Positions 1,415 to 36,996 of a stretch of 64,000 nucleotides of DNA are shown here, piece after piece. Numbering within the stretch: the first letter of the stretch is position 1; every line of letters starts with the position of its first letter. Made by a program: the position numbers and the translations under genes. Below the pieces are notes generated by a model. That model was not told where the DNA came from and searched no databases. It saw only the letters and a program-made list of their open reading frames with translations. The DNA is taken from sequence record MZ779063.1. One strand, written 5' to 3'.

Positions 1415-1666
1415 GTGGATAATAATAATGTAAGTAGTAAAATCAATAAAAATCAATTACAAACAGCAATGAATAATATGACTAAAAATATAAATGGTAT
1501 AAGTAGAAAGATAACAGGACAAGATAAAATTGATGAAATTAATAAACTTAAAAGAGAAAATGAAGAATTACATCGTTTTCTCTTTAAGATCTATCAAGAT
1601 GATGATTTTGATAGAAGAGAATTGAAGAAAATTATATTTAAAGATGTAAATAAAAAATTTAAATAA
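1415..1666 (+). CDS. small coiled-coil hypothetical protein, C-terminal tag family
   Basis: AAGGA RBS; INKLKRENEELHRFL coil; ends DVNKKFK. Confidence 0.75.
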   Translation: MDNNNVSSKINKNQLQTAMNNMTKNINGISRKITGQDKIDEINKLKRENEELHRFLFKIYQDDDFDRRELKKIIFKDVNKKFK

Positions 1667-1668
1667 GG

Positions 1669-1875
1669 GTGATTAATTTGAATTCAGATATCCGAATAGA
1701 TAGAAGTGGCCTTTATATACAATCTAATGAGAAGCAGATGAAAGGACAAATTAAAATTATAGAAGAAAACAAAAAATTAAAAGATTTTATTATTGGTATT
1801 AAAAATAATGGTGGTTATGATGAAAAGGAATTAAATAAAATAGTAAATGAAATTGTTAAGGAGAATTTAAAATAA
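1669..1875 (+). CDS. small coiled-coil hypothetical protein, C-terminal tag family
   Basis: IEENKKLKDFII coil; ends NEIVKENLK; stop overlaps the next ATG. Confidence 0.75.
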   Translation: MINLNSDIRIDRSGLYIQSNEKQMKGQIKIIEENKKLKDFIIGIKNNGGYDEKELNKIVNEIVKENLK

Positions 1876-2330
1876 TGTCAAATGAAAAAGTTATTGCTAA
1901 AGAATTAACTTTAGATCAAAAAATTAAAATGTTAGAACCAAAGATAGATGAAGAGACTTATTTAAGACCATTAAGTCAAGTAGATGAATCTTTTTATAAT
2001 GAGGTTATTAAAGATGAATTAATTGAGAAAATTAATAATGAAGACCATAAATTTGAAAATAATTTCGATTATCATATATTTAAAAATGGACCAATACAAT
2101 TACTAGGTTTCATTTATAAATTTGAATTTAATGAAAATGCAGTAAATGTTAAAAAAGAAAAACCTAATGAAGGTAATATCTATTTTGGAAGCTTTATATT
2201 AAATAATAAAAATAAAAAAGATGATTCAATATATTTACTTAGAGTTGATAGCAGCTTAGTTGATTTCAGTATATTAGAAAATAAAAAATATAAAGAATTT
2301 GGACGTAATTTATTTAAATTAATTAAATAG
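1875..2330 (+). CDS. hypothetical protein
   Basis: Coupled TAATG start; AAGGAG RBS lies inside the upstream gene. Confidence 0.75.
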   Translation: MSNEKVIAKELTLDQKIKMLEPKIDEETYLRPLSQVDESFYNEVIKDELIEKINNEDHKFENNFDYHIFKNGPIQLLGFIYKFEFNENAVNVKKEKPNEGNIYFGSFILNNKNKKDDSIYLLRVDSSLVDFSILENKKYKEFGRNLFKLIK

Positions 2331-2341
2331 GAGTGATATAA

Positions 2342-2620
2342 ATGGATAAAGAAATCGAAGATTTAGCAGGAGGAATAAACAATCTAGAAATTGACCTTAA
2401 AGATATGAATCATAGATTATCTAATGATAGATCAATTATTATTTTTGAGATTGAAAAATTAAATAAAGCTGTAAATGATCTTTATGTATATAATGAAAAT
2501 CTTAAAAAGGAAAATAAACTTCTTAAAGAAGCAATAGTGTCTATTTCTAAGCATACAGAATTTAAGAATGATTATATAAATAAACTGTCTAATGAAATTG
2601 TTAAAGAAAATTTTAAATAA
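2342..2620 (+). CDS. small coiled-coil hypothetical protein, C-terminal tag family
   Basis: AGGAG RBS; LKKENKLLKEAIVSISK; ends NEIVKENFK. Confidence 0.8.
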   Translation: MDKEIEDLAGGINNLEIDLKDMNHRLSNDRSIIIFEIEKLNKAVNDLYVYNENLKKENKLLKEAIVSISKHTEFKNDYINKLSNEIVKENFK

Positions 2621-2640: not shown

Positions 2641-2916
2641 TTGAATAATGAAAAAAGTTTAATTAAGCGTATGGAAGAGTTAGAAGAACGTACTAGAATG
2701 AATGAAATTAAATTAAATACTATGAAAGATAATTATCATTATATAAATGACATTATAGGCACATTAATTAATAGAATAGAAAATTCTAATCAAACTAATG
2801 AAAAGAAATTAGATGAAATAAGATTAGAGTTAGTCCGTCTTTCTAACGAATTAAATTCACATTCTGAATTAACTAAAAAGTATCTAAAGAATTTTATCAG
2901 AGATAATCTTAAATAA
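2641..2916 (+). CDS. small coiled-coil hypothetical protein, C-terminal tag family
   Basis: Heptad pattern; ends KNFIRDNLK. Confidence 0.75.
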   Translation: MNNEKSLIKRMEELEERTRMNEIKLNTMKDNYHYINDIIGTLINRIENSNQTNEKKLDEIRLELVRLSNELNSHSELTKKYLKNFIRDNLK

Positions 2917-3207: not shown

Positions 3208-3435
3208 ATGAACTCAAATATTAATTTTAATGATAATGGATCATCTATGGATGAACTATATTCAAGAATGCAACTTAGAGCCGCTAAACAAGTAGAAAAA
3301 GATATATTGGGAGATAATGAAAAAGATTCCCTAGAAAAAGAAGTAAAAGAACTTAGAGAACTTGTTCTTGAAGTAGCTAAAAAGTATGATGTTAAAGAAA
3401 TAAAAGAATATCTAGTTAGAAAAAATATGAAATAG
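3208..3435 (+). CDS. small coiled-coil hypothetical protein, C-terminal tag family
   Basis: GGAGG RBS; LEKEVKELRELVLEVAKKYD; ends KEIKEYLVRKNMK. Confidence 0.8.
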   Translation: MNSNINFNDNGSSMDELYSRMQLRAAKQVEKDILGDNEKDSLEKEVKELRELVLEVAKKYDVKEIKEYLVRKNMK

Positions 3436-6027: not shown

Positions 6028-6095
6028 TTTAATGAGATTGAGATGGAATTAATCTTAATACTCAAAAATAAAAATTTTTAATTACAAGGAGAGAT

Positions 6096-9725: not shown

Positions 9726-11789
9726 ATGTTAAAAAAGACTACAGAAAATGAATTAGAAAAGTTATTCAATGTCACTATTTATAATGAAGAATTTTCTAAT
9801 TTAAAACCTATGTATAATAGAAAAGATACTGAAACTAGAACTAAATTAAATGACAATCAAAATTCTAGAGTGTATGAGAATTTAATAAATTTCATTAATT
9901 ATTCTAAAGCAGGAATGACACACATGTTTTTAACTCGTTCTAATAAATATAGAGATAAATATATTGATTTTCTAAGAAATAGACTTGGTAAGGAAGATTT
10001 ATTAGATGAGGTTGAATTTGAATATACAGATAGATATTTCAGATCTTTCATATATAATATAGATATAATTAGAAGAAGTGAATATCAAACACATCAATCT
10101 ATAGAAAATGACTCTAAATTAGAAGATTCATTCTTATTAAGAAATGGAAATACAAATATAGATAGCTTTAAAACGGATAATGGTTTATCTATAGAATTTT
10201 TAGATAAAGATGTAAAGAAAGATTTTTTAGATAAGAACAAACAAATTAGTTTAGAATCTTTGCTAGATATCGATACGATGGTGTCTAATTCATTAAGAAA
10301 GAAATGGTTAAAATCAATTGAAAAAGAAGAATTACCTGATATGAATATTATATTTAAAGAAGTTCCAGAAGTAGTAATTATACTAGCAAACAGTATATAT
10401 GAAAGATCAAATTTCAAATTATCATATGTAGATAGAAGTGTTATTAATATACACGCAGACGTTTCAGATGTTTTGGAATCAATACTAACTTTAATTTCTA
10501 ATTTTAATTATAAATTAATATTAGATTTAATAGATGAAGATTACTTAAGTAAAAATTTAAATCATTTCAAAGCTTCTGAATTTTCTTTATCTGACAATAA
10601 TGACATTGATAATATATTTAGTATAATCGGAATTATTAAAAAACAAACGGACGTTATTAATAAATTTATAGAAAAAAGCAAATCAGATAATCTAGAAGAC
10701 AATATTAATTTAATAATTAAAGAAAATGAAATAGATGATGACTTTGGAGAAATATTAAAAGTTTATATTGATAGTGTATTATCTAAATTTAGAGAATATA
10801 TTGAAGATGATACCAATATATTAAAAGATTCATCTAAGGTTTTAATAGGTGAAAATCTATTTGATTTCTTTATGAAATTAGATGATCTCGAAATTTTAAT
10901 GATTAGAAATATATACAGAGTTTTAGATAGTAATGTATATAATCCTGTAATCAGAGATGTTAAAGAATCACAAGAAAAAGTTATGAATGGAATAGTAGAT
11001 TATTTTAAAAATAATACTAAAAAATTATCTTTAGATTTATCTAATATCGATATAAGTAGATTGAAAGATAGTTCTTTCACATTATTAAACGATTTCATAA
11101 CAAATGGAGAAGTAAGTAATCTTCGTATGAAACCTAATGAAGCTAATATGGAGTATTTCTATAAATTAAGTGTGGATAAAGAATTAAACCGTGACATATT
11201 AAATAGTAATATACAATATATGAAACAGGAATTATTAAAAGGTTTTAATGATAATTCTAAAATGACTTCAAATGCTATTATTGAATTTGATAATTTTAAT
11301 ATTAATTTTGCTGTAATAGAAAATAATTCATATAATAATGAAATAGAAATAATGATGCAAGGAGTTACTTTTAAGAAAAAATTAACTGATGAGGATATTG
11401 CTACTATCTTTTTATATTCACATAAAGAAGTTAGTATATATCAAGACAAAAAATTAGTTATCATGGATAGAAATTATTTCTCTAGAAGAGGTATAAATAA
11501 ATTTATAAATAATATGAATAATGTCTTCACTGATTTAGATGGAGAAAGTTTATCTAAATATATGTCTTTAATTTATAATTTATTATCTTTATCAGATAAT
11601 TCTTTTGAGGAAGATAAAGCAATTTATAATACTCTATATTACAATAAATTTGAATATATTAATAAAGAAAATGAGTTAAAAGTTGATAGTTATATTAATA
11701 TGATTAATAATAAAGATGTAACAGATGATTTTAAAAAGAAATTTAAAAAGGTAAGATCTAAGTATTTAGTTTCTAGAATATTTATTTAA
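9726..11789 (+). CDS. large hypothetical protein with a degenerate C-terminal tag
   Basis: AAGGAG RBS; 687 aa; ends KYLVSRIFI. Confidence 0.8.
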   Translation: MLKKTTENELEKLFNVTIYNEEFSNLKPMYNRKDTETRTKLNDNQNSRVYENLINFINYSKAGMTHMFLTRSNKYRDKYIDFLRNRLGKEDLLDEVEFEYTDRYFRSFIYNIDIIRRSEYQTHQSIENDSKLEDSFLLRNGNTNIDSFKTDNGLSIEFLDKDVKKDFLDKNKQISLESLLDIDTMVSNSLRKKWLKSIEKEELPDMNIIFKEVPEVVIILANSIYERSNFKLSYVDRSVINIHADVSDVLESILTLISNFNYKLILDLIDEDYLSKNLNHFKASEFSLSDNNDIDNIFSIIGIIKKQTDVINKFIEKSKSDNLEDNINLIIKENEIDDDFGEILKVYIDSVLSKFREYIEDDTNILKDSSKVLIGENLFDFFMKLDDLEILMIRNIYRVLDSNVYNPVIRDVKESQEKVMNGIVDYFKNNTKKLSLDLSNIDISRLKDSSFTLLNDFITNGEVSNLRMKPNEANMEYFYKLSVDKELNRDILNSNIQYMKQELLKGFNDNSKMTSNAIIEFDNFNINFAVIENNSYNNEIEIMMQGVTFKKKLTDEDIATIFLYSHKEVSIYQDKKLVIMDRNYFSRRGINKFINNMNNVFTDLDGESLSKYMSLIYNLLSLSDNSFEEDKAIYNTLYYNKFEYINKENELKVDSYINMINNKDVTDDFKKKFKKVRSKYLVSRIFI

Positions 11790-11800
11790 ATATATATTAT
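11787..11800 (+). promoter_or_regulatory. early-type promoter TAAATATATATTAT
   Basis: Exact copy overlapping the upstream stop codon; hairpin 11803-11836 follows. Confidence 0.7.
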
Positions 11801-11861: not shown

Positions 11862-13049
11862 ATGGATATGAGTAAAGCAATAAAAGATTTATTTATCAAT
11901 TACAATATATCTTATATTGAAGTTAATGAAGATCATGAACTTAATGAAATTGATAAAGAAGAATTATTAAAAATATTAGATTTTGATATTAAATTTGAAA
12001 AGGAAGAAATTTTAATAAGTGATAATATTAAAATAAATAATTTTAACGGTAATAAGTTAATAAATTTTGTATTTAATTATTACTATACAGATAATGAATC
12101 ACTAAAAGTATTTTTAAAAGATGTTATTAAAGATATTATTTTATATGGGTATAAAGAAGATAGAAAAATAAGTTTAAATATTTCTCAATTACCTTTAGTA
12201 TTTTATATAAATAAATTCTGTAAAGATAATGGTATTAAAAATATTAAATTCCACTATACTTTTAAAAATTCATATGGAAATTTTTCATTTGGTTTATTAA
12301 AAGAAGAACATCTAGATGAATTTATTGATGATATAGAAGAAATAAGAAATAATAAGTTCTTCAATTTAAATAGTGGATTATTAGATAATGACTTAATAAT
12401 TAATGGAAATGAAAAGAAATTTATGAAGCTAATATCAAGTTTAATAGATTTAGATATGTCACATAAGGGTAATATATTTAAATTAAAAATGATAAATTAT
12501 TTTTATAAATTATTTAATAGTTATATTAATAGTGAAGAAGATTTAGAATATGCAGATGAATTAATGAAGTTTAAAATAGATAGTCTTAAATATGGTGAAT
12601 TTAATAAATATTATCTATATGAAAGATTTATAATCGGTATAGATAATTTATATGAACAAGAATTCTTAGGATATAATACAAGAATGAATTATAATTATTT
12701 TATTGATAAAATACAAAAAATTGAAGATGAAGATGAAGTTAAATATATTTCAAAAATTGTTTTCTTTACATTAATAGATGATATTTATAAGGAAGCATCA
12801 TTCTTTTTATCTTTTAGAACAGTCAATAAATATACTGATATTGCAGTTAAAGAAATATTGAAATTGATTGAAGACAATCTTACAGAAAATCAGAAGAAAC
12901 AATTTGTCAGAGAATATATGAGTATGAAAGATAGTTCATTTTATGCTTCAAATGAAAAATATAATCAAACATCTACACTTGTTAAAATGTCTAAAGGGAA
13001 ATTGAAAAAATTAATTATGAATGAAACAGTTAAAAAGACATTTATTTAA
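11862..13049 (+). CDS. hypothetical protein, C-terminal tag family
   Basis: AGGAG RBS; ends NETVKKTFI. Confidence 0.8.
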   Translation: MDMSKAIKDLFINYNISYIEVNEDHELNEIDKEELLKILDFDIKFEKEEILISDNIKINNFNGNKLINFVFNYYYTDNESLKVFLKDVIKDIILYGYKEDRKISLNISQLPLVFYINKFCKDNGIKNIKFHYTFKNSYGNFSFGLLKEEHLDEFIDDIEEIRNNKFFNLNSGLLDNDLIINGNEKKFMKLISSLIDLDMSHKGNIFKLKMINYFYKLFNSYINSEEDLEYADELMKFKIDSLKYGEFNKYYLYERFIIGIDNLYEQEFLGYNTRMNYNYFIDKIQKIEDEDEVKYISKIVFFTLIDDIYKEASFFLSFRTVNKYTDIAVKEILKLIEDNLTENQKKQFVREYMSMKDSSFYASNEKYNQTSTLVKMSKGKLKKLIMNETVKKTFI

Positions 13050-18230: not shown

Positions 18231-18252
18231 ATAATTGAATGAGGTATTTATT

Positions 18253-21714: not shown

Positions 21715-21728
21715 TAAATATATATTAT
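21715..21728 (+). promoter_or_regulatory. early-type promoter TAAATATATATTAT
   Basis: Exact copy; no clear downstream hairpin. Confidence 0.7.
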
Positions 21729-24372: not shown

Positions 24373-24386
24373 TAAATATATATTAT
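24373..24386 (+). promoter_or_regulatory. early-type promoter TAAATATATATTAT
   Basis: Exact copy; perfect hairpin 24393-24423 follows. Confidence 0.7.
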
Positions 24387-24455: not shown

Positions 24456-25064
24456 ATGGATTTAAAAGAGAATAAATTTTATTATAATAAAGATATTAAT
24501 GAGCTTTTTATAATTGGTAAGGATGAAAGTGATATTAACGATAAGATAAATAAATTCTATTATAAAAAATTATTAGAAAAAAATTTAGATTATCATGGTT
24601 TAATTAATAATCTTTATTATAATAGAAATATAAATTTTGATTTAATGGATGATGACGATATATATTTTAGTAATATGTATAATGGAATTAGAGAATATAT
24701 TAAGGTGAGTTATGTAGAATTTTCATGTACAAATTTTGAAGATAATGAAGTAATATTACAGTTAGATACTTTTATTGATAAAAGCAATGATAAAAATCTT
24801 TTAGAAGTTCATAAAGATTCGCATGGTGTTACCATAACAATGGTAAAAGGTTTTTATGAAAAAGATCTTATAAATTATAATGAATACAAAAATATTTTAG
24901 ACAAATTATCTGATCTGTTTGACACAATGCTTAAAGAAGAAAATGATGGAAATATTAAAATCTTTATAAATGATATTGATATATTTGAACCTTATGCATA
25001 TTTTAGAGAGTTAGAAGACGAAAGAGGAATTAAAAATATTTTGGTTAAGAAAAATTTTATATAA
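24456..25064 (+). CDS. hypothetical protein, tag family
   Basis: Starts FYYNKDINELFII; ends YFRELEDERGIKNILVKKNFI. Confidence 0.8.
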   Translation: MDLKENKFYYNKDINELFIIGKDESDINDKINKFYYKKLLEKNLDYHGLINNLYYNRNINFDLMDDDDIYFSNMYNGIREYIKVSYVEFSCTNFEDNEVILQLDTFIDKSNDKNLLEVHKDSHGVTITMVKGFYEKDLINYNEYKNILDKLSDLFDTMLKEENDGNIKIFINDIDIFEPYAYFRELEDERGIKNILVKKNFI

Positions 25065-25078: not shown

Positions 25079-25705
25079 ATGGATGTAAATGAATATATAA
25101 ATAATCATGATTTTTATAGAGTTGGGAATGACGGTCAAGTATTTGTATTTAATAAAGATATATCAAAAGATGAATTAAATTCTAAAATATTTTCTAAATT
25201 ATTTGCATGCGAAAATATAGGAATTTTATTGTCTGAATATGGTTATTATGTAATAGATGAATATAATGTATTCTTAAGAAATAATGATAAAATATTATTA
25301 GTTGAAAATATGACTATTGATCTAAGTTTAATTAAAGATGATCTAATTGAATTAAATTTTGCATTAATTATTAAATCTAGTCTTCCTTCAAAAATTGGTC
25401 CTTTTGAAAAAGATAAAGGTAATCATGATGATTTTTATTATTATGATACTATTATTCAAATAGAAAATAAAGATAACTTTCAACATGAATTAATTTCCCA
25501 TATAACAAATCATTTTAATAAAATGAGTGATGTTGATTTAATGCTTTTAACTGCTAAAAATGAAATTAAATTTAATAAAGATTATAGTATTAATAAAAAA
25601 TGTATTGATTTTAAATGTAATTTTAATGAAATTTATAAAATACTTAATAAATTAGAAGATGAAAAAGAAATTAAGAAATATCTAACTAAAGAAAATTTTA
25701 AATAA
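25079..25705 (+). CDS. hypothetical protein, tag family
   Basis: Starts FYRVGNDGQVFVF; ends LEDEKEIKKYLTKENFK. Confidence 0.8.
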   Translation: MDVNEYINNHDFYRVGNDGQVFVFNKDISKDELNSKIFSKLFACENIGILLSEYGYYVIDEYNVFLRNNDKILLVENMTIDLSLIKDDLIELNFALIIKSSLPSKIGPFEKDKGNHDDFYYYDTIIQIENKDNFQHELISHITNHFNKMSDVDLMLLTAKNEIKFNKDYSINKKCIDFKCNFNEIYKILNKLEDEKEIKKYLTKENFK

Positions 25706-25718: not shown

Positions 25719-26282
25719 ATGAATTTAGATAATATTGTAATATTAAAAAAGAAAAATGATGGTAAATTTGACAATAACAAATTTATAGAATTTAATCATA
25801 ATAATATTGATAATGATGAAATATTAAGTCTTTCTTTAATTACTCTATATACAAGCGTATATGCATTTTATATAAAAAGTGATATAAAATATGACAATTT
25901 TGTTAGTTATTTAGCTAATTTTTATTTAGAAATAGATGGGTATTTAAAAGGACCTTTAAATATAACACATGATGAAAATAATAGAATGCTTATAATTTAT
26001 AAAGGAAGACTACCACAAGATATTTTCAAAGTTAGAGAATTTAACGTAAATACTAAATTATATGCGTATTTAATTAAAGATGATGAATACAATACGGTAG
26101 AAGATGATCTAATCGAATCAGTAATCAATGGATCAGAATATATAATGAATAGTGAAAGAATTAAGCCAAAAATTATTATTAATGGAGCATATAAGGATAT
26201 TACGAATGTATTAAATTATTTTGAAAAACTTACTGATGAAAAAGAAATTAAAAAATATCTAATTAAAAAAAATTTTAAGTAG
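25719..26282 (+). CDS. hypothetical protein, tag family
   Basis: Ends YFEKLTDEKEIKKYLIKKNFK. Confidence 0.8.
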   Translation: MNLDNIVILKKKNDGKFDNNKFIEFNHNNIDNDEILSLSLITLYTSVYAFYIKSDIKYDNFVSYLANFYLEIDGYLKGPLNITHDENNRMLIIYKGRLPQDIFKVREFNVNTKLYAYLIKDDEYNTVEDDLIESVINGSEYIMNSERIKPKIIINGAYKDITNVLNYFEKLTDEKEIKKYLIKKNFK

Positions 26283-26299: not shown

Positions 26300-26923
26300 T
26301 TGGATAAGTCATTATATGTATCGGATATATTCGATGAGAAAGTTATAGGAAGAAAGGATCTTAATAAAGATGAACTTTTTGATTTGTCATTTAATACAAT
26401 TTTAAATAATTCTGCTGACACTAGATTTAATAAAGAAGGAATTAGGTTAATGTTATCATTTTCAAAGGGATTAATTTTAAAATTTGATTATGCAGACAAA
26501 TATTTTTATGTGAAAGATTTTATATTTTTAATAGAAAAAGTTGATGGTAACTATGAATTTAATTTTACATTAAGTATTCCAGAATTTGCAGACAGTGAAA
26601 TTGAAATTGAATTAGGAATTTTTGAATCGGATAAAGGTCATAGAGAATTTTATTTTAATGATTTTTCTTATTATAAAGAAGGAAAAACTTTATTAGAAAG
26701 AGCTAAAGAATATTTAATATACGATATTTTTAATAATTATGGTGTTATTTTTAGTATTTTTTCATTAAAAGACAAAAATAGAATTTTAACAGACGATAAT
26801 TTTATCATAGATAATAATGATATAGATGAAATTTATAGTCTAAAAAATATAGATAACGTATTTAGAGAAGTAACAAACGAAAAAGAAATTAAAGAATACT
26901 TAGTTCAGAAAGGATTTAGATAA
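26300..26923 (+). CDS. hypothetical protein, tag family
   Basis: AAGGAGG RBS with TTG start; ends FREVTNEKEIKEYLVQKGFR. Confidence 0.8.
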   Translation: MDKSLYVSDIFDEKVIGRKDLNKDELFDLSFNTILNNSADTRFNKEGIRLMLSFSKGLILKFDYADKYFYVKDFIFLIEKVDGNYEFNFTLSIPEFADSEIEIELGIFESDKGHREFYFNDFSYYKEGKTLLERAKEYLIYDIFNNYGVIFSIFSLKDKNRILTDDNFIIDNNDIDEIYSLKNIDNVFREVTNEKEIKEYLVQKGFR

Positions 26924-26924: not shown

Positions 26925-27536
26925 ATGAAAATAGACTTAGAATCTTATGAATACTATTACCATGATGAAGAAAAAATATTAGTTCCAGTATCATTAGATA
27001 TGAAGAAAGAAAATGCAAATGAGTTAATGACGTTTGAATATTATAAGAAAGTTTTTAAAAGTTTTAATCATAATATATTTCATAAAAGAATTCACGATGA
27101 TAATATACTATTTAGTACTCGATTAAATAAAGTGATTAACAAAAGTACTGGTATATCAATACCTGCTTATGATTTATATATACATTTTGAAATAGATAAC
27201 TCATTAAATATTATTTCCTTAGAATTAAGTTTTTCAATGGATACAAATCACTTTGATTTATTTAGAACATTCTATAAAGATAAAATAGAAGTTATAAATT
27301 TTTCAAAGACAGATTTTTTAAACTATAATCAAAATGTAGATAATTTAGAAGATAAAATGGCATGTCTATTAGCTAAATTATTCTTTGATATGCACAATGA
27401 TGAAAATGAAGATATTGAAATATATGTAGATAATTTTTACCATGAATCACTAGACATAGCTAAGCCATATAAATATTTTAGATTGATGGGAGAAAAAGAA
27501 ATAAAAAATCTAGCAACTAAAAAAACTTTTAAATAA
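26925..27536 (+). CDS. hypothetical protein, tag family (similar to 24456-25064)
   Basis: Ends PYKYFRLMGEKEIKNLATKKTFK. Confidence 0.8.
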   Translation: MKIDLESYEYYYHDEEKILVPVSLDMKKENANELMTFEYYKKVFKSFNHNIFHKRIHDDNILFSTRLNKVINKSTGISIPAYDLYIHFEIDNSLNIISLELSFSMDTNHFDLFRTFYKDKIEVINFSKTDFLNYNQNVDNLEDKMACLLAKLFFDMHNDENEDIEIYVDNFYHESLDIAKPYKYFRLMGEKEIKNLATKKTFK

Positions 27537-28568: not shown

Positions 28569-28571
28569 GGA

Positions 28572-28984: not shown

Positions 28985-28998
28985 TAAATATATATTAT
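28985..28998 (+). promoter_or_regulatory. early-type promoter TAAATATATATTAT
   Basis: Exact copy; hairpin 29008-29037 follows. Confidence 0.7.
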
Positions 28999-29062: not shown

Positions 29063-29839
29063 ATGGAGAAAATTAACAAATACTACATTAGTAAATCGAA
29101 AGATGAATTTATAGAATTAACTTTCAATGAAAATGAAACACTCTATTTTGACTTTAAGTGGAAAGTTTTAAGTGAGCTATTCACTACAATGCAAATAAAT
29201 TATAATAAGAGATTTCTTATATCTCATGAAGAACATGATGACAATGGTTTAGTTGGTCTTAGAATAAATTTCAATGCTTTTCCCACAGTTAAATACAAAT
29301 ATAAAGGTAAGAAAAATAAAATGGAACTTCTTATATACGCTATAATACGCTTTAGTCTAAATGAAGAAGACGATAATTATATTAAGTTTAAAGCTGTTCC
29401 TTTATATAATAATAGTGAAATAGGGAAAAGATTATTTAGTAAAAGATCTGGTATATTTGATGATAATGGTGAACTAGATTTACCGCATGACTTTAATGAA
29501 GAAGTTATGATTCGCTTTTTAAAATATTTTAAAAGCCATATACAAAAAGGAAAAAGACCTTTAGAACTCAAGGACGATTTACACAAGATGTTTACTACTA
29601 CAAATAAATTAATTTTTGAATTACTAGATCAGATACAAGATCATTCAGATATTGAATTTCTTATTGCACCCGATTGGGATTTTAGTGGTAAAGAAATGGA
29701 AAAAGAAAAAGGTTTTAGTTTTGAAAAAGAATATGATAAGTATATCAGTTTAAATGATTTCGATGTTGATGCATATTTTAGAGAAATAACTGATGAGAAA
29801 GAGATTAAAAAATTTAAAGTTAAGAAAGGATTTTCCTAA
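29063..29839 (+). CDS. tag-family paralog (29063-33880 array)
   Basis: Starts KYYISKSKDEFIEL; contains LDQIQDHSDIEF; ends YFREITDEKEIKKFKVKKGFS. Confidence 0.8.
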   Translation: MEKINKYYISKSKDEFIELTFNENETLYFDFKWKVLSELFTTMQINYNKRFLISHEEHDDNGLVGLRINFNAFPTVKYKYKGKKNKMELLIYAIIRFSLNEEDDNYIKFKAVPLYNNSEIGKRLFSKRSGIFDDNGELDLPHDFNEEVMIRFLKYFKSHIQKGKRPLELKDDLHKMFTTTNKLIFELLDQIQDHSDIEFLIAPDWDFSGKEMEKEKGFSFEKEYDKYISLNDFDVDAYFREITDEKEIKKFKVKKGFS

Positions 29840-29840
29840 T

Positions 29841-30659
29841 ATGAAAAATAATACAAAATATTTTATAGATAAAAAAAGAGATGAATTAATTGAAATTGAT
29901 AAAGAATATCTTAATCGATATGAGTATATTGCACACGTATTAACTGTCATTGATATGAATAAGCTTTTATATATTGAAGATCATGCTAGATCCTTTATAA
30001 ATGGTATTAATATTGAAGAAAATGATGTGGGAAATGGATTGACTTTTAATAATATAGAAATTCATAATAATATCCATTTCAAAAATATAAATAGTAAAAA
30101 TAATGCGTATAAAAATTTTAATACCGATTTTTATATAAACTTCTTTATTGATAGAATGGATAAAGTTAAAACTCAGAATTTTAAGTTAAAATTTAATTTT
30201 TATAATTCAATATATAAAGAATATTTTAATAAAATTACCAATAATTTATTAAATGAAGATAATTTAGTCAATGAAGGAGTAAATAAAGAAATAAGATCTC
30301 TTATGAATTTTGAATTATTTAAAAAAGAGTTATATAATACTAAATACAATAATAGTGAATATTTAAATCTTTTTGAAAATTCATCATATATGAAGGACAA
30401 TGTTATTGGATTTATAAATAAATTTGAAGGATTATTTTCTAGTGTAATATACCAAAATAACCTTAGTGTATTAATGACTCTTTATGAAATAAAATACATG
30501 TATGAAGATGACATAGATTTTTATATTAATTTTTATAATGAAAATTATGGTTTAGTTAATATATTAGAATTAATCGAAAGTGATGAAAATGATTTATTTA
30601 AAGAAATTAAAACAGAAAAAGAAATGAAAGCGTTTAAAGTTAGAAAAGGATTCAAATAA
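29841..30659 (+). CDS. tag-family paralog (29063-33880 array)
   Basis: ATG 29841 uses AAAGGA inside the upstream tag (ORF track starts at 29793); starts KYFIDKKRDELIEI; ends FKEIKTEKEMKAFKVRKGFK. Confidence 0.8.
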   Translation: MKNNTKYFIDKKRDELIEIDKEYLNRYEYIAHVLTVIDMNKLLYIEDHARSFINGINIEENDVGNGLTFNNIEIHNNIHFKNINSKNNAYKNFNTDFYINFFIDRMDKVKTQNFKLKFNFYNSIYKEYFNKITNNLLNEDNLVNEGVNKEIRSLMNFELFKKELYNTKYNNSEYLNLFENSSYMKDNVIGFINKFEGLFSSVIYQNNLSVLMTLYEIKYMYEDDIDFYINFYNENYGLVNILELIESDENDLFKEIKTEKEMKAFKVRKGFK

Positions 30660-30680: not shown

Positions 30681-31421
30681 ATGGAATATAATAATTACTA
30701 TAGATATAAATTAGATGGAAAAATACTTCACTTTGATATGGATAGAACTGATTTACGTAGAGATAAATTGGCTGAAATATTTACTAAAGTTAAGATGGAA
30801 TATATTTATAAAGATAAAAAAATGATTAAAAAAGCAAGAAACTTTATTTACCGATCTAATCTTTCTTTAGAGTATTCTCATTTTAAAGATAAAGTATTTG
30901 TAATCAAACAAATTTCTAAAATGCTAAGTAAAAACAATGTAAGGGATTTATTAATTTACGATACGGATCTTAGTTTAGAATTTAATTCTATTTTAGACGG
31001 TGGTATATTTAAAAAAGATTTTCCAGAAGGATCCTTTTATGAAAAAATAGAAAGTAATATGAATAGAAAATATTTAATTTTAAGTGATAATATAAGACAC
31101 ACTAGTGAAAGTTTTGTTGATTTATATGATAAAGATTATATTTTAAATTTTGAAGAAGTAGAATTGCTAGTCAAAGAATTTAATAAAACTCTTTTAAATT
31201 ATCTTATGGATTTAATGAGTTATGGAAATCTAGAATTAAAAGTTAGAAAATCGGAGTTAGCATATTTTATGACAGGAATATATACAAAAATGGAAGAAAA
31301 CGAAGATAAGTTATTCCCTATATTTGATTATAAATTTTTACTTAATGAATCTGGATTATTTGAAGAGATTACAGATGAGAAAGTTATTAAAGAATATTTA
31401 GTGAAAAATAATTTTAAATAA
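30681..31421 (+). CDS. tag-family paralog (29063-33880 array)
   Basis: Starts YYRYKLDGKILHF; ends FEEITDEKVIKEYLVKNNFK. Confidence 0.8.
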   Translation: MEYNNYYRYKLDGKILHFDMDRTDLRRDKLAEIFTKVKMEYIYKDKKMIKKARNFIYRSNLSLEYSHFKDKVFVIKQISKMLSKNNVRDLLIYDTDLSLEFNSILDGGIFKKDFPEGSFYEKIESNMNRKYLILSDNIRHTSESFVDLYDKDYILNFEEVELLVKEFNKTLLNYLMDLMSYGNLELKVRKSELAYFMTGIYTKMEENEDKLFPIFDYKFLLNESGLFEEITDEKVIKEYLVKNNFK

Positions 31422-31437
31422 AAAGGAGATCAATGTA

Positions 31438-32220
31438 ATGAGTATAAATAAAAGTCATAAAAAATATTTTTTGAGTAAAATGACAGATGATTTATTTGAA
31501 GTTACTAACTTATACAGATATAATATAAATGAAGATTATTTATATCTACCTCAATTACTTTCTAATTTACAAGTAAAAAGTAATGAAGAAATAAATATAC
31601 TTTCTGAAGAGATTGTTGGTAAAGATGATAATGGAGAGAATTTATGGTCAGGAACTATATCAGCTGGATATATTTTTCCAGTTATCAAATATAATGTTAA
31701 TAATAAAAAGACAACGAATATACTTATTATTGATTTTGATATTATTTTCAACGAATCAATAGAAAATGAAAACTATTTAAAAGTTAGAATTGAAAATCCA
31801 TACTCTTCAGGTATAAATTCAATAATTTTTAATAGCGTTATTGGCAATATATTAGATGAATCCAATTCTTTAAAAGTGCCTTTTAGATTTCATATAAATA
31901 GCATGGAAGATTTAATATCAGATTTTAATAATGGTACAGAAAATAATTTTAGAAATAATAAAGATTTATACCAAATATTAGTTGAAGTAAATAGTTCTAT
32001 ATTGGAACTTTTATCACAAATTAGAGATCATTTTGATATAGAATTCTTTGTATCAGATTCTTGTTTCTCGCATATACCGGAGAATGATAAAAGAGATAAT
32101 GATGATATAGATGATAGATACTATAATTTATTTGACGAATATAAAATATCTGGAGTATTTGAAGAGATTATGGATGAAAAGATTATTAAAAAATATTTAG
32201 TGAAAAATAATTTTAAATAG
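31438..32220 (+). CDS. tag-family paralog (29063-33880 array)
   Basis: Starts KKYFLSKMTDDLFEV; contains LSQIRDHFDIEF; ends FEEIMDEKIIKKYLVKNNFK. Confidence 0.8.
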   Translation: MSINKSHKKYFLSKMTDDLFEVTNLYRYNINEDYLYLPQLLSNLQVKSNEEINILSEEIVGKDDNGENLWSGTISAGYIFPVIKYNVNNKKTTNILIIDFDIIFNESIENENYLKVRIENPYSSGINSIIFNSVIGNILDESNSLKVPFRFHINSMEDLISDFNNGTENNFRNNKDLYQILVEVNSSILELLSQIRDHFDIEFFVSDSCFSHIPENDKRDNDDIDDRYYNLFDEYKISGVFEEIMDEKIIKKYLVKNNFK

Positions 32221-32235
32221 AAGGAGATCAATATA

Positions 32236-33030
32236 ATGGGTGTAATTAAAAGTGATAAAAAATATTTCTTATGTAAAATAAATGATGAATTATTTGAAGT
32301 TGATAAAAATCATAGAGATTCATTTTTATATGACTATTTACCTTTAATAATAGCTGAAAAAATAATTAATTCGACTGAAAAAGATTCATATGAAACTAGA
32401 GCAATGGATGTTTATTATAAAAAAGAAGATAATGTAATTGAAGGTAATTTAAAATTTTTAGCAAGATGTTTACTTCCTGTCCTGTATAATTTCAATAATA
32501 AAAATTCATTTAAAACCGTTATGACTCTCGCAAATTTTAAATTTAAAAGGGATGCTAATAAATCTACTTTTAGTATAGATAAAAATAGTGTTAATGATAA
32601 AATACTATTTCAAATGAGACCTTTAGGAAATGAAATTGATGATATTTTATTTAATAGTATTATAAGTGACCTTTTGAACGAAGATGACGAAATAGAAATG
32701 AAACAAATGTTATTAGTTGGTAATTTTGAAAAATTATTAAACGAAATTGATAGTCAAAATATAAAACATCATGATGATTTTAAAATTTTAATCAAAGATA
32801 TATTCAATATTTATCTTAATTTATTAAAATCCTTAAGACATCATCTTAATATTGAATTTTTCTTTTCTGAATCTTCTTTTCTAGACACGTTAAATGTTTA
32901 TAATTTTGATATTATTAATAAAGATAGTTATAAAATAAATATTTTTGAAGATGATTTAGATGGAATATTTGAAGAAATTACCGATGAAAAATTTGTTAGA
33001 GAATATTTAGTGAAAAATAATTTTAAATAA
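32236..33030 (+). CDS. tag-family paralog (29063-33880 array)
   Basis: Starts KKYFLCKINDELFEV; contains LKSLRHHLNIEF; ends FEEITDEKFVREYLVKNNFK. Confidence 0.8.
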   Translation: MGVIKSDKKYFLCKINDELFEVDKNHRDSFLYDYLPLIIAEKIINSTEKDSYETRAMDVYYKKEDNVIEGNLKFLARCLLPVLYNFNNKNSFKTVMTLANFKFKRDANKSTFSIDKNSVNDKILFQMRPLGNEIDDILFNSIISDLLNEDDEIEMKQMLLVGNFEKLLNEIDSQNIKHHDDFKILIKDIFNIYLNLLKSLRHHLNIEFFFSESSFLDTLNVYNFDIINKDSYKINIFEDDLDGIFEEITDEKFVREYLVKNNFK

Positions 33031-33043
33031 AGGAGTTAATATA

Positions 33044-33880
33044 ATGAGTGATGTATATTATGAATATAAATTGAGAAATAAAATATTTAAGTTTAATGAT
33101 GAAATTGAAGATTTAAGCGATACCGGTATTAAGAACTTTATAACATATGAAAATAATATTTTAAGCAATTTATTGACAAATATATTAATTGATCATACTG
33201 TCTATGGTTTTATACCGAATATATCCTATGAAGAAAATAAAAATGATGGTGTTGATAAAGAATATGTAAAAAAGGTAAATTTAAGTATTTTAAAACATTT
33301 ACCCTTAGTATCATACAGTGTAGGTAATTCAAATATATTAAATGATTTTTCTTTAAATGTCAATTCTGTTGTTGATATTTATAAAAAAGGAAATTTCGAA
33401 GATGAAGAAGGCAATAAAATGATTATACCTAAAGAAAATTTTAAATTGGAGACAAATATAAATATTGATAATTTAGGTGGAAAAATCGATCATGAATTAT
33501 TTAATAAAATATGTGGAGATATTTTTGATCAAGACGAGAATTTTTTATTTTATAAAATGTATGATCATATATTAGAGGAAAATTCTATGTCACTATATGA
33601 GAATATAGGAAATATAAATAATAAATTGGTTTATGAAATTATACTCCGTTTAAATAATAATATTTTATCATTATTTGAAAAAATCAGAAGTCATTTAGAC
33701 GTGAGATTTTATTTAAGAGATAAAGACTTTTATCTTTTCAGTAATGGAGAAATAGACAAAGATTCATTAAGTGACGAATATATTGAAATATCTGAATTTT
33801 TAGGAAAATCATCTTTATTTAAAAAGATTACAGATGAGAAGATTATTAAAAATTATGAAATAAAAGAAAACTTCAAATAA
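33044..33880 (+). CDS. tag-family paralog (29063-33880 array)
   Basis: Starts YYEYKLRNKIFKF; contains FEKIRSHLDVRF; ends FKKITDEKIIKNYEIKENFK. Confidence 0.8.
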   Translation: MSDVYYEYKLRNKIFKFNDEIEDLSDTGIKNFITYENNILSNLLTNILIDHTVYGFIPNISYEENKNDGVDKEYVKKVNLSILKHLPLVSYSVGNSNILNDFSLNVNSVVDIYKKGNFEDEEGNKMIIPKENFKLETNINIDNLGGKIDHELFNKICGDIFDQDENFLFYKMYDHILEENSMSLYENIGNINNKLVYEIILRLNNNILSLFEKIRSHLDVRFYLRDKDFYLFSNGEIDKDSLSDEYIEISEFLGKSSLFKKITDEKIIKNYEIKENFK

Positions 33881-33936
33881 AATTAAAAATTTATAGTAAC
33901 GGAAATATATTTATCAATAGGAGTTGAAACTGGATA

Positions 33937-36672
33937 ATGAAGATTAAAAGATTAAAGTTAAAGAATTTTATCGGTATTTATGCTGGTATGGGATTAAAAG
34001 AAGTTGAAATTGATTTTAGTAAAAGTAAAAATAATATGATTATGCTTCTTGGAGATAACGCTTCAGGTAAGACGACAGTTATGTCTAATCTTAATCCATA
34101 TAGAGAAACTAATGATCAACGTAAAACTATAGTATTAGAAGATGAAAAAGGTATAAAAGAGATTGATTATATTAAGGGTAATGATGTTTATGAAATTAAA
34201 CATCATTATGGTAAAAACAGTTCTCAAAATAAATCATTCATTAAGAAAAATGGTGAAGAACTTAATGAAAATGGTGGTATTAAATTATTCAATGAAATAG
34301 TAGATAAAGAATTAGGTGTATCTAAAGAATACTTTACTGTAGGTCGTTTAGGTGATAACGTATCAAACTTCATTGACTATACTACAGGTGATCGTAAATC
34401 ATATATCAATAAATTTGTACCTAATATTGATAGATACTTAGAAGCTTATAAAGTAGCTAATGAGAAATTAAAAATTATTACTAAAGATTTAAAATCACTT
34501 AGATTTGATTTAGACAAATATAAAGAATTTGATGAAATCAAAAAAGAAAAAGAGAATTTAGAAACTTTAATTGATCAATTACAAAATGAACTTGATGAAG
34601 CTAATAAAGATAAAACAACTCATGAAACTAAAATGAATTCTATCATGGAAGATAAGTACAAAGAGATTCATCCAACTGAATATAAAAATCAATTAATTAA
34701 TGAAATTAATGAACTTAATCAAGAATTAGAAAAAGAAAGAAAGTTAAAAGAAGATAATGAGAATTTAAATAAATATACTATTGAATCCGCTAATGAGAAA
34801 AAAGATAAAATAGATACTATATTAAATAATACTAATAATGAGTTGACTTCTGTTGAGAAAGATAAAGAGAATAATCAAGATAAATTAGATGATTTAATCA
34901 GTAGAAAATCTAAAATAGAATCTCGTATGAATGCTATCAAATTTAATGAAGATTATGATGCTTCTGATGAAATTGATTCAATTCTTGAAGGATATAAAGA
35001 AGATTTAGAAGGTATTAAAGATGATGTAGATATTTCTAGAGGGTCTTTTGTAAGTGAATTCGGTTTACAAATTAAAGATAATATTAAAGAGGATTCATTA
35101 AGATTATATGTAAATGATTTAATTTCTAAGGTAGATAATTTTAAAGAATTTATTAATGATAATGAATTTAAATATGGTTCTATTCGTGGAGATTTTGAAA
35201 GTGAAATTAAAGATAATAATGAAAAAATTTCTATGAACCAGAATGAATTTAATGAAATTAATACTAAGCTTAATCAAATTAAAGGTAAATCAGACTTATT
35301 AAAAATATTAGATCAAAAAGATCATGAACACTATAATGAATGTGTATTTGTTCCTTTAGTAGCTGACTTTAAAGATAATGAATTTGATTCAATTTCTGAA
35401 TTAGAAAATAAAGGTAATCAACTTTATAAAGATAATCAAGAATTAGAAAAAGATAATAGATTATTATCTAATCATATTGATTTATTACGTAAATTTAATG
35501 ACATACTTAATAGCAGAAATGGTTTAATTGAATATATTGGTTTTGAAATGATTGATATTGATAGTATTGAAGAAATATTTACTAATGGTAATACATTCTC
35601 TAGTGAACTAAATAGACTTAATTCATTAATTGAAAAGACAAATGAAATTCGTACTAATGAAACTAATAGAGATAAATTGACTATTGAATTAGAGAGAAAA
35701 GAAAATGCTCTTAAAGAAGATTATTCTAATAAGAAAATATTAGATCAATATAAAGAAGATAAAGAAGATTTAGTTAAACAAATTGAAGAAATTAAAAATA
35801 AAAATAATGAAATTTCTGAGAATCTTAATTATCTTAATGGTCGTAAAGAAAAAGCAATTACTAACTTAAATATTATTAATGAATTTATTAATCTAACAGA
35901 GAGATCTGAAGAAATTAAATTAAAAATGAAAGATAAAAATGATATAGTTGATGACATTGATAAGGATCTTTCAAAATTAAGTAATTTATATGAACTTAAT
36001 CAAAAAGCAGACAATAAGATTCAATCTATTAAAGATAATTTAACTATGAAGAAAAATGATTTAGAATCTACTAAAGAAAAATACTTTGCAGTTAATTCTA
36101 TTATTACTAAGATTGATGAAATTGAATCAGTGTTATGGAAATATAATATGGTGGTAGACTCATTAAATCCTAAGAAAGACTCTATACCATTAATATTCAT
36201 TACTAATTATCTTAAAGATATTGCAGTAAGTACTAATGAATTACTTTCAGTTGCTTATAATAATTCATTTAAAATTGACTTTGACTTAACAGATAAAGAT
36301 TTCTTTATTAATGTGTATAAAGGTAATGGAACTGAACTTAAGGATATTAAAGAAGCTTCTCAAGGAGAAACAGCTTTAACTAATATTAGTTTATCATTAT
36401 CATTATTAAACAAAGTATCTCAAGATTATAATATTCTATACTTAGATGAAATGGATTCAACATTAGATTCTAATAATAGAAGAAGATTTGTTGATGTGAT
36501 TGACAGACAAATTGAATTAATGGGTCTAGAGCAAGTATTCTTAATTAGTCATAATGATGAATTTTATAGTGCTAATATTGACTTAATTTTACTTAAAGGA
36601 TATGAAAGTAAAATTGACATTAATAATGAAGAAATGATGCAAGGTAAAAATGTATTATTTAAAGTAAACTAA
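33937..36672 (+). CDS. sbcC: SbcC/Rad50/T4 gp46-like SMC ATPase (recombination nuclease subunit)
   Basis: GDNASGKTT Walker A, long coiled coil, ASQGE signature, LYLDEMDS Walker B, LISH H-loop. Confidence 0.9.
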   Translation: MKIKRLKLKNFIGIYAGMGLKEVEIDFSKSKNNMIMLLGDNASGKTTVMSNLNPYRETNDQRKTIVLEDEKGIKEIDYIKGNDVYEIKHHYGKNSSQNKSFIKKNGEELNENGGIKLFNEIVDKELGVSKEYFTVGRLGDNVSNFIDYTTGDRKSYINKFVPNIDRYLEAYKVANEKLKIITKDLKSLRFDLDKYKEFDEIKKEKENLETLIDQLQNELDEANKDKTTHETKMNSIMEDKYKEIHPTEYKNQLINEINELNQELEKERKLKEDNENLNKYTIESANEKKDKIDTILNNTNNELTSVEKDKENNQDKLDDLISRKSKIESRMNAIKFNEDYDASDEIDSILEGYKEDLEGIKDDVDISRGSFVSEFGLQIKDNIKEDSLRLYVNDLISKVDNFKEFINDNEFKYGSIRGDFESEIKDNNEKISMNQNEFNEINTKLNQIKGKSDLLKILDQKDHEHYNECVFVPLVADFKDNEFDSISELENKGNQLYKDNQELEKDNRLLSNHIDLLRKFNDILNSRNGLIEYIGFEMIDIDSIEEIFTNGNTFSSELNRLNSLIEKTNEIRTNETNRDKLTIELERKENALKEDYSNKKILDQYKEDKEDLVKQIEEIKNKNNEISENLNYLNGRKEKAITNLNIINEFINLTERSEEIKLKMKDKNDIVDDIDKDLSKLSNLYELNQKADNKIQSIKDNLTMKKNDLESTKEKYFAVNSIITKIDEIESVLWKYNMVVDSLNPKKDSIPLIFITNYLKDIAVSTNELLSVAYNNSFKIDFDLTDKDFFINVYKGNGTELKDIKEASQGETALTNISLSLSLLNKVSQDYNILYLDEMDSTLDSNNRRRFVDVIDRQIELMGLEQVFLISHNDEFYSANIDLILLKGYESKIDINNEEMMQGKNVLFKVN

Positions 36673-36708
36673 AATCTGTTATTAAAAATTTGAGAGGAGT
36701 AACTCTAT

Positions 36709-36996
36709 TTGATTCTTAATGTTAATAAGACTTTAGATGCTAAATTGGAAAAAGAAATGTATGATGATATTAGAACTGCATTCATTGATAGTACGTTAAC
36801 ACCAATCCGTTATAAAAAATTAGAAGATTTATGTGAAATCCATAATAAAGATATAAAACTTTATTATAACCATGATATGATAGAATCTAAAGAATTAAGA
36901 AAAAGTTTGATTAGATTTTATAAAGAAAATAATTTAGATGAAGACGAATTCATTATAAAGATTAAAAAAGAAGTTATTAAAGATACATTTAAATAG
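36709..36996 (+). CDS. small hypothetical protein, C-terminal tag family
   Basis: GAGGAG RBS with TTG start; ends KKEVIKDTFK. Confidence 0.75.
   Translation: MILNVNKTLDAKLEKEMYDDIRTAFIDSTLTPIRYKKLEDLCEIHNKDIKLYYNHDMIESKELRKSLIRFYKENNLDEDEFIIKIKKEVIKDTFK

Follow-up and report, generated by a model that had tools for sequence, protein, structure and literature searches.

Among jumbo phages, lineage-specific paralogues are exemplified by a zinc-ribbon expansion of about 35 copies in Bacillus phage G (PMC7824862). The C-terminal module that we describe here in the Staphylococcus jumbo phage vB_SauM-UFV_DC4 (hereafter DC4) recalls that expansion, which likewise comprises dozens of copies in one narrow lineage, mostly hypothetical and thought to serve host conflicts (PMC7824862). 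In contrast to the phage G copies, those of DC4 keep only a 20-residue terminal module and a short N-terminal motif, their bodies diverge past sequence recognition with the module held at a fixed distance from the C-terminus, and the proteins that bear it belong to no Pfam, PHROGs or NCBIfam family. A second point of reference is provided by the poxvirus ankyrin-repeat proteins, in which variable bodies are joined to a conserved C-terminal PRANC/F-box-like domain that plugs into one machinery. The likeness is one of design only, namely many paralogues, diversifying bodies that bind targets (putatively so in DC4) and one constant C-terminal piece, whereas in DC4 the host is bacterial, the module is shorter, neither sequence nor fold is related and the partner is putative.

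Several described systems also rely on short terminal elements. The cargo-loading peptides of encapsulins and the capsid-targeting sequence of phage T4 are terminal peptides on cargo that is made with the shell and ends inside it. The DC4 tail resembles them as a short terminal peptide carried by different proteins where the shell is of the HK97 type, but its bearers appear to be early proteins, none was found in a shallow virion proteome and the tail is modeled within a fold. Signals of the ssrA and MuA types, which are recognized by ClpX, lie at the extreme C-terminus, those of the MuA type with basic residues before the end. The DC4 tail is equally terminal (89/89 matches), but it mostly ends in Lys or Arg, spans about 20 residues and is predicted to be helical and packed. 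Proteins such as MinD and FtsA carry C-terminal membrane-targeting helices, and SAP/HeH is a helix-turn motif. Like the former, the DC4 tail is a short basic C-terminal helix, but its amphipathicity does not exceed that of random peptides; unlike the latter, the C-terminal pieces from DC4 have no Pfam match.

The window analyzed here comprises bases 1-64000 of DC4 (MZ779063.1), a stretch of 64,000 nucleotides. The original prediction listed 27 + strand ORFs with a common C-terminal motif, and all 27 stop positions are real ORF ends with a tail of the stated type. Strong and weak members were defined with a C-terminus-anchored weight matrix and leave-one-out scoring, which divided the 27 into 21 strong matches and 6 looser variants (ORFs ending at 1666, 1875, 2620, 2916, 11789 and 13049). 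Of three ORFs singled out earlier as looser, those ending at 1666 and 11789 are indeed weak, but the one ending at 22297 scores as strong (21.5). Across the whole genome we found 34 strong and about 9 weak members, all on the + strand. The set had been placed at 1415-36996, where bearers do lie, but it is not restricted to that interval because the genome holds about 16 further copies between 126 and 200 kb. The window holds most of this multigene set, which numbers about 35-43 bearer genes per genome; the bearers represent about 40 early genes, or some 15% (about one-seventh) of DC4 genes. As predicted, none of the polymerase, RNAP, helicase, SbcC-like, portal and - strand genes carries the tail. 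The enrichment over shuffled sequence also held: genome-wide, 30 of the 290 gene-like ORFs end in the six-residue core, versus 0.12 expected from 500 residue shuffles, among which the highest count was 2. A second expectation, derived from the internal rate of the core (34 matches in 77,358 positions), was 0.13. We conclude that the C-terminal motif is genuine and occurs far above chance.

Table 1. Tail-bearing ORFs and early promoters in the DC4 window, with scores from the C-terminus-anchored weight matrix.
Coordinates (strand)	Feature	Length (aa)	Score	Remarks
1415..1666 (+)	ORF, loose tail	83	below threshold	V at -6 and F at -2 kept; SA1 orthologue has same ending type
1669..1875 (+)	ORF, weak tail	68	2.1	SA1 orthologue ends alike
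2342..2620 (+)	ORF, weak tail	92	7.3	SA1 orthologue scores 9.4
2641..2916 (+)	ORF, weakest tail	91	-4.8	just under threshold; L replaces F at -2
3208..3435 (+)	ORF, strong tail	75	18.7	SA1 orthologue scores 30.6
9726..11789 (+)	clade-specific protein, variant tail	687	5.3	ending retained in orthologues only 33-36% identical overall
11788..11800 (+)	exact AR9-type early promoter 13-mer			G at +1; heads unit 11862-15817
11862..13049 (+)	clade-specific protein, variant tail	395	0.6	
13811..14470 (+)	bearer	219	25.7	in MarsHill and PB50, not in SA1
14473..15084 (+)	bearer	203	35.7	
15176..15817 (+)	bearer	213	26.3	
18235..18831 (+)	bearer	198	20.2	between DNA polymerase and deoxyribonucleotidase genes
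21716..21728 (+)	exact early promoter 13-mer			87 nt upstream of array 21815-24362
21815..22297 (+)	bearer	160	21.5	paralogue of 23025-23516, 65% identical
22313..23014 (+)	bearer	233	28.9	
23025..23516 (+)	bearer	163	22.8	
23709..24362 (+)	bearer	217	19.9	second structure model
24374..24386 (+)	exact early promoter 13-mer			70 nt upstream of array 24456-28982; predicted transcript begins with hairpin
24456..25064 (+)	bearer	202	29.5	
25079..25705 (+)	bearer	208	37.8	profile link to 26300-26923, probability 86%
25719..26282 (+)	bearer	187	38.8	orthologues only in Staphylococcus jumbo phages
26300..26923 (+)	bearer	207	24.5	
26925..27536 (+)	bearer	203	23.9	
28986..28998 (+)	exact early promoter 13-mer			65 nt upstream of array 29063-37165
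29063..29839 (+)	bearer, 260-aa family	258	34.2	
29793..30659 (+)	bearer	272-288	21.2	annotated start 29841; profile link to 29063 family, probability 93%
30681..31421 (+)	bearer	246	37.7	
31438..32220 (+)	bearer	260	37.5	confident structure model
32236..33030 (+)	bearer	264	31.0	
33044..33880 (+)	bearer	278	28.8	
36709..36996 (+)	bearer	95	14.2	follows SbcC-like gene; relatives have variant endings there

The motif was first described as a six-residue core that is often extended. The core is enriched as described, but the conserved block is longer and covers positions -20 to -1, with no conservation signal upstream of -20 among the 34 strong DC4 members. Within these members, V, I or T occupies -6 in 34/34, F occupies -2 in 32/34, and K or R is found at -10 in 32/34, at -5 in 31/34 and as the final residue in 27/34. 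Further upstream, K at -13 (27/34) is flanked by E at -14 (23/34) and -12 (24/34). A position-weight scan of 159,411 windows returned 89 matches, all 89 with exactly one residue after the near-invariant Phe and none at an internal, non-terminal site. The last 13 residues are basic (net +2.8), while the bodies are acidic (net -6.6). In its hydrophobic spacing, with Asn or Gly ahead of the final aromatic residue, the tail is reminiscent of a capped helix.

Synonymous codon variation had been taken as a sign of selection on the peptide, and the variation is indeed seen, with dN/dS and codon identity in agreement. Across 42 orthologue pairs (NG86), dS was about equal in the tail (0.36) and the body (0.39), whereas dN was 0.089 in the tail and 0.18 in the body, which corresponds to dN/dS of 0.25 and 0.46, respectively. 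Where paralogue tails share an amino acid, the codon is shared in 71.7% of cases versus 68.8% expected from codon usage, and replacements within the tail (K/R, V/I, I/Y) keep chemistry rather than bases. The bodies of the bearers diverge so fast that most paralogues are unrecognizable by sequence. Tails are 61% identical where bodies are 29% identical, and tail identity is 35% in pairs with no detectable body similarity, as compared to 7.6% for random 20-mers. The final 7 residues of the 395-aa protein do not change even among orthologues with about 30% overall identity. Thus, the last 18-20 residues are under purifying selection at the level of the peptide and not of the DNA.

Bearer genes form tandem arrays on the same strand with similar gene sizes, at 13811-15817, 21815-24362, 24456-27536 and 29063-33880. 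Four bearer-holding units have an exact match to the AR9 early promoter consensus (PMC5312081), AAATATATATTAT-(6N)-G, located 62-87 nt ahead of their first gene. Based on this promoter identity with AR9, the arrays are probably transcribed early. The module was found only in the ten sequenced Staphylococcus jumbo phages, and the relatives of DC4 carry 12-17 bearers per syntenic 50 kb, with copy number and content varying. Same-strand tandem arrays of similar-sized genes, confinement to one clade and copy number that varies between relatives together mark a lineage-specific expansion. In the regions of AR9 and Listeria phage LPJP1 that were read, about 41 kb per genome, the motif does not occur, and searching a phage collection with the tail returned no phage outside the Staphylococcus jumbo phages. 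Because of these absences, the module is a feature of the Staphylococcus clade and not of AR9-like phages. In line with the original prediction, which took the motif to be undescribed for AR9-like phages, we found no prior description of the module in the literature searched.

We also investigated how the bearers are related to one another. Their assignment to several otherwise dissimilar families is accurate for sequence, but the 200-aa array is connected to the 260-aa array in structure searches, and an N-terminal motif is common. With tails removed, BLAST and hhalign join subsets only (the 29063 group with 29793, and 25079 with 26300), and an hhalign match between the two arrays extends 66 columns upstream from the tail. 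In Foldseek searches, the 200-aa and 260-aa arrays match the same predicted structures (probability 0.99-1.0, TM 0.3-0.5), although confidence is low for one query model and common tail letters may inflate the 3Di+AA scores. The model of the 23709..24362 product is poor (pLDDT 49), and its best BFVD matches include entries of the 260-aa family. A regular expression for an N-terminal hairpin motif, composed after seeing the data, matches 18/43 bearers and 19/247 other proteins. The AF2 model of the 31438..32220 product (pLDDT 82.4, pTM 0.85) places the tail as a short strand (241-244) and a capped terminal helix (247-259) inside a compact alpha/beta fold, with pLDDT of 89, 89 and 72 for the tail blocks. 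This confident model speaks against the earlier picture of an address peptide appended to unrelated folds. Most bearers of 140-290 aa may share one ancestor, which would have comprised an N-terminal hairpin, a pre-tail helix-strand and the tail; we suspect that the tail pairs with the hairpin. Searches of Pfam-A, PHROGs v4 and NCBIfam revealed no family common to the 27 proteins, only isolated weak matches to single members. The A3 profile had no match among PDB sequences at E up to 1, the best Foldseek match in the PDB had an E of 0.17 with TM of about 0.1-0.2, and eight 40-residue C-terminal pieces gave no SAP, HeH or other Pfam match at E up to 10.

The reading that we favor, while holding it at slightly short of even, is that the bearers form one early multigene family, specific to the clade and hyper-diverging, whose constant C-terminus acts as a docking handle. 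The conserved Lys/Glu face of the tail, its Phe and its free carboxylate would dock onto one common putative partner, from the host or from among the early or injected proteins of the phage, and the acidic variable body would give target specificity. Such a combination of variable bodies with a constant tail would fit a battery of host-takeover or counter-defense proteins. As judged from sequence, the conservation of exposed-type K/E positions on bodies that have diverged beyond recognition is consistent with a shared reader. The original prediction of a terminal signal read by one receptor is thus retained in part, in that the terminal register and the selection on the peptide fit, but a free peptide does not fit a tail that is modeled within the fold. 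Roles as a free sorting signal, degron or membrane anchor are all less likely than one as a docking handle. It is rather doubtful, though conceivable, that the tail is a true terminal address, such that one host or phage receptor reads the Phe-x-COOH and basic helix of about 40 early proteins. If so, about 15% of phage genes would converge on one hub that places, activates or passes on diversifying host-takeover or counter-defense effectors, and a linear C-terminal docking code would be known for the first time from the early proteome of a phage. Jumbo phages are rich in unannotated early genes, and the tail is a simple, checkable mark that joins about one-seventh of the genome and ties together genes that sequence searches do not relate. 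If it is a docking handle, then its partner would offer a way into the functions of about 40 orphan proteins together and would show how a phage organizes a fast-evolving effector repertoire.

Since the tail lies inside the fold in the AF2 model, purely structural constraint could account for its conservation, with the tail nucleating the folding or capping the end of a single fast-diverging paralogue family that has no common receptor. We consider this explanation unlikely but a serious contender, since a strand and helix within a compact fold (pTM 0.85) are what it predicts, the equal-sized tandem genes, common N-terminal motif and structural cross-matches suggest one family, and the similarity between arrays reaches well upstream of the tail. 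However, the exposure-type K (-13, -10, -5) and E (-14, -12) are 68-85% conserved among otherwise dissimilar paralogues, and the end-point is invariant in 89/89 matches, a fixity that a terminal helix does not need. Furthermore, strong tails occur on proteins of 75 aa and 95 aa and variant tails on proteins of 395 aa and 687 aa, none of which fits a 200-260-aa fold; the 75-aa ORF (3208..3435) is too short to hold it. Even if only structural, the tail would provide an annotation rule for the Staphylococcus jumbo phage clade and would cleanly illustrate how the termini of a family can outlast all other similarity.

In comparison to a docking handle, the remaining explanations fare poorly. It is improbable that the tail is a timing or degradation tag through which a host AAA+ protease or unfoldase removes or unfolds early proteins on schedule. 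The strictly terminal position with a free carboxylate (89/89 matches), which known ClpX-type tags share, the early promoters of the genes and the basic stretch ahead of the end would all suit such a tag, but 27/34 tails end in K or R rather than in a non-polar residue as in the ssrA type, and the module is predicted to be helical (pLDDT 72-89) and part of a fold rather than a floppy end. We hold it to be quite improbable that the tail is a free sorting signal by which proteins are packaged into the capsid and then ejected into the next cell, like the cargo-loading peptides of HK97-fold shells. A short terminal peptide common to proteins of very different length would suit sorting, and the phage does package proteins such as its virion RNA polymerase. 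However, the arrays lie behind early rather than late promoters, the tail is modeled within a fold, and no bearer is among the 15 DC4 virion proteins detected by LC-MS (PMC10638138), which is a weak negative from a shallow data set; because of the promoters and the virion data, capsid loading and ejection, an option in the original prediction, is disfavored. Membrane targeting, another of its options, is disfavored because the hydrophobic moment of the tail (0.24) is no higher than that of random proteome 13-mers (0.27, sd 0.14). The net charge of +2.8 and several hydrophobic positions in the last 13 residues would suit an amphipathic helix that takes early proteins to the cell membrane, but mean hydrophobicity is -0.33, and we regard this role as very improbable. 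Finally, a signal at the nucleic-acid level (a recombination box or regulatory site) or gene conversion, with the peptide as a by-product, is close to refuted. The tail-coding DNA is AT-rich and present as about 40 repeats in a single orientation, which would suit such a signal, but its synonymous divergence equals that of the bodies, codon sharing is near expectation and replacements preserve the chemistry of the tail and not its bases.

All 27 stop positions named in the original prediction proved to be plus-strand ORF ends that carry the described C-terminal ending, and, as was also claimed, none of the enzymes or minus-strand virion genes has it. The window corresponds exactly to bases 1-64000 of Staphylococcus phage vB_SauM-UFV_DC4 (MZ779063.1). 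Across the genome of this jumbo phage, DC4 (263 kb, G+C 24.5%), in which the sequence outside the window was covered as separate, unjoined pieces, the six-residue core of this ending terminates 30 of 290 gene-like ORFs, compared with 0.12 expected from residue shuffles and 0.13 expected from the internal frequency of the pattern, which rules out chance or composition as the source of the shared ending. Conservation extends beyond the core: information content is high from position -20 to -1 and falls to background farther upstream. Using a weight matrix of this tail anchored at the C terminus, with leave-one-out scoring, we identified 34 strong bearers in DC4 (scores 11-39) and approximately nine further weak bearers, and the top score for an internal window was 7.4 (n = 64,105 windows, same matrix). 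All of these bearers have plus-strand genes, which lie at 1.4-37 kb and 126-200 kb. Among the strong bearers, position -6 is Val, Ile or Thr in all 34, Phe occupies -2 in 32/34, Lys or Arg is found at -10 in 32/34 and at -5 in 31/34, and -3 is Asn, Thr, Gly or Ser in 30/34; Lys at -13 (27/34) and Glu at -12 (24/34) and -14 (23/34) are also frequent. The window contains 21 strong bearers and six looser variants, which end at 1666, 1875, 2620, 2916, 11789 and 13049; the ORFs ending at 1666 and 11789 had been correctly called looser matches, and the one ending at 22297, also called looser, is not among the six. Two large proteins (395 and 687 residues) have variant endings that are retained in orthologues only ~30-36% identical overall, which indicates that they are real bearers.

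When every 17-residue window was scanned in 1,164 ORFs from the DC4 genome and from ~50 kb each of the relatives Machias, SA1, MarsHill and PB50, exactly one residue lay beyond the Phe column in 89/89 matches, and no internal, shifted or extended copy of the tail was found in the 159,411 windows. Codons at conserved tail positions track genome-wide usage, and DC4 paralogue tails that share an amino acid use the same codon in 71.7% of cases, versus 68.8% expected from codon usage. For 42 orthologue pairs (Nei-Gojobori), dN was 0.089 in the tail versus 0.18 in the body, i.e., the remainder of the bearer, at similar dS (0.36 and 0.39, respectively). These results indicate that the constraint acts on the peptide, as the original prediction had proposed from synonymous variation, and rule out both a DNA or RNA element as the cause of tail conservation and gene conversion as the process that maintains it. 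Tail identity is 61% where body identity is 29%, and it is 35% between proteins that lack detectable body similarity, versus 7.6% for random 20-mers.

We also examined how widely the tail is distributed. DC4 has nine Staphylococcus jumbo phage relatives (S6, PALS_2, Madawaska, MarsHill, Machias, PB50, SA1, LY01 and AH12); outside this clade, the Bacillus AR9/PBS1 group and Listeria phage LPJP1 come next, with ~45% identity in a piece of the beta-prime subunit of the virion RNA polymerase. When 50,697 phage records were searched by tblastn with one tail, only the ten Staphylococcus jumbo phages matched. A tail profile searched against 1.84 billion representative proteins gave 13 matches at E up to 0.001, comprising 11 clade proteins matched at their extreme end and two unrelated repeat proteins matched by chance, and scans of IMG/VR, GTDB genomes and JGI metagenomes found no relatives of the tail. 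In the single 41-kb region covered in each of the LPJP1 and AR9 genomes, neither the tail ending nor any other repeated ending was seen. The syntenic site, flanked by the virion RNA polymerase and SbcC-like genes, is occupied by four untagged genes in LPJP1 and by a few small genes in AR9; with no tagged genes there, we conclude that the tandem arrays of bearer genes are an expansion specific to the Staphylococcus jumbo phage clade. Array content varies within the clade, with 12-17 bearers per syntenic 50 kb. SA1 lacks the bearer trio at 13811-15817, which follows 13064-13777; Machias has a single short untagged gene in its place, PB50 one bearer and MarsHill two. Even close relatives differ through gain and loss of array genes.

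The early promoter consensus of AR9, which is read by the injected virion RNA polymerase, consists of a 13-mer, six bases and then G (PMC5312081). The exact 13-mer occurs seven times in the window, in each case intergenic, on the plus strand and 52-87 nt upstream of a gene, and the G is present in six of the seven copies. Because exact copies head bearer-holding units (table), the bearer arrays are predicted to be transcribed early. The early arrays also include untagged genes, at least four of which recur at the corresponding position in relatives, and the tail is thus not general to the early accessory genes of DC4. Predicted early transcripts, taken to start at the +1 G, open with a hairpin no more than 3 nt from the 5' end (-10 to -17 kcal/mol, z -3.3 to -5.3). 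These hairpins may be 5'-terminal stabilising stem-loops; some had been called terminators by a simple terminator scan.

Features of the predicted early transcription units in the window
Feature	Position	Strand	Remark
Early promoter heading bearer-holding unit	11788	+	exact AR9 13-mer
Early promoter heading bearer-holding unit	21716	+	exact AR9 13-mer
Early promoter heading bearer-holding unit	24374	+	exact AR9 13-mer
Early promoter heading bearer-holding unit	28986	+	exact AR9 13-mer
Untagged gene within early array	1875-2330		counterpart in relatives
Untagged gene within early array	2921-3202		counterpart in relatives
Untagged gene within early array	13064-13777		counterpart in relatives
Untagged gene within early array	27594-28373		counterpart in relatives
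Untagged gene within early array	28572-28982		
5' hairpin	6034-6063		stable
5' hairpin	11807-11832		stable
5' hairpin	24393-24423		stable
5' hairpin	29008-29037		stable
5' hairpin	21309-21330		weaker
5' hairpin	48757-48783		weaker

The bearers had been described as otherwise dissimilar families, which largely holds at the level of sequence: with tails removed, BLAST, hhalign on orthologue profiles and an iterated segment HMM linked just a few subfamilies. Structural matches and an N-terminal motif nevertheless suggest kinship. Searches of Pfam, PHROGs, NCBIfam, PDB sequences and PDB folds returned no curated family match for the bearers, and a SAP/HeH likeness of the tail was rejected for want of Pfam support. 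The N-terminal motif, in which an aromatic pair leads through a turn into a second hydrophobic stretch, occurs in 18/43 bearers versus 19/247 other proteins, in a test that is weak because the pattern was composed after inspection of the data. It lies within the first 25 residues, e.g., in the bearers that begin at 21815, 23025, 24456, 29063, 31438 and 32236, and is also found in DC4 171866-173717. An AlphaFold2 model of the 260-residue bearer 31438-32220 (14 sequences, pLDDT 82.4, pTM 0.85) is a compact alpha/beta protein in which the motif forms an N-terminal beta-hairpin (strands 8-13 and 19-23), with a long helix at 175-198 and a strand at 201-205. No PDB counterpart of this model was found, and its BFVD matches were all unnamed entries, identifiable as Staphylococcus-clade proteins from their sequence identity to the query; among them is one of 206 residues (16% identity, TM 0.41-0.48). 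The model of the 217-residue bearer 23709-24362 is poor (pLDDT 49) and was used solely for a cross-match check, in which the best BFVD matches included the 286- and 258-residue entries matched by the first model (probability 0.99). When the profiles of the two arrays were compared, 66 columns running upstream from the tail could be aligned. There is thus moderate evidence that the bearers of 140-290 residues form one hyper-diverged superfamily; those of 75, 95, 395 and 687 residues cannot have the same whole fold.

The module is constant, strictly terminal and selected as a peptide, and it is carried by fast-evolving proteins that, we infer from their promoters, belong to the early class. We tentatively read the tail as a putative docking handle, whereby the constant C terminus would dock each bearer onto one partner common to all bearers and the acidic, variable body would supply specificity (net charge -6.6 for the body and +2.8 for the tail). 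Four observations favour this reading: residues of exposed type are conserved, the distance to the carboxylate does not vary, the module is carried by proteins of widely differing size, and the bodies show an arms-race signature. The main rival, which we consider unlikely, is that the tail is a purely structural terminal cap kept by descent; in the 31438-32220 model, the tail follows a loop and consists of a strand (241-244) and a helix (247-259). Four other readings are each weakened by specific results. A degron is improbable, and a capsid cargo signal is about equally so; no bearer is among the 15 DC4 virion proteins of the published LC-MS data set, which is shallow (PMC10638138). A membrane helix is very improbable, and its amphipathic form was rejected because the hydrophobic moment of the tail is no higher than random. 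That the tail is a nucleic-acid signal is scarcely credible.

Lineage-specific multigene families with a constant terminal piece are already known in other viruses. The novelty here lies in the instance itself, the strictness of its C-terminal register and its scale within a phage; no description of the shared tail was found in the searchable literature, which included the genome papers of DC4, MarsHill and PALS2 and a broad survey of jumbo phages.

Two deposited names in the window are misleading: 'rpoC1 subunit gamma' (19699-21210) is the N-terminal part of the beta-prime subunit of the virion RNA polymerase, and 'smc1' (33937-36672) denotes the SbcC-like ATPase. At 62429-63943, the ORF is just the end of a 4.25-kb gene (62429-66682 in the record), which encodes an RNA polymerase beta subunit detected in the virion, according to the DC4 paper. 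Among the minus-strand genes, the lysin-type neighbours 53361-54158 and 54324-55274 share a 68-residue C-terminal domain that is 85% identical and presumably involved in cell-wall binding, and the last 22 residues of the two proteins are near-identical. The 183-residue protein encoded at 52737-53288 (minus strand) resembles the 782-residue tail-fibre-like protein encoded at 55343-57691 (minus strand) over 52 N-terminal residues (33% identity, E 1e-6).
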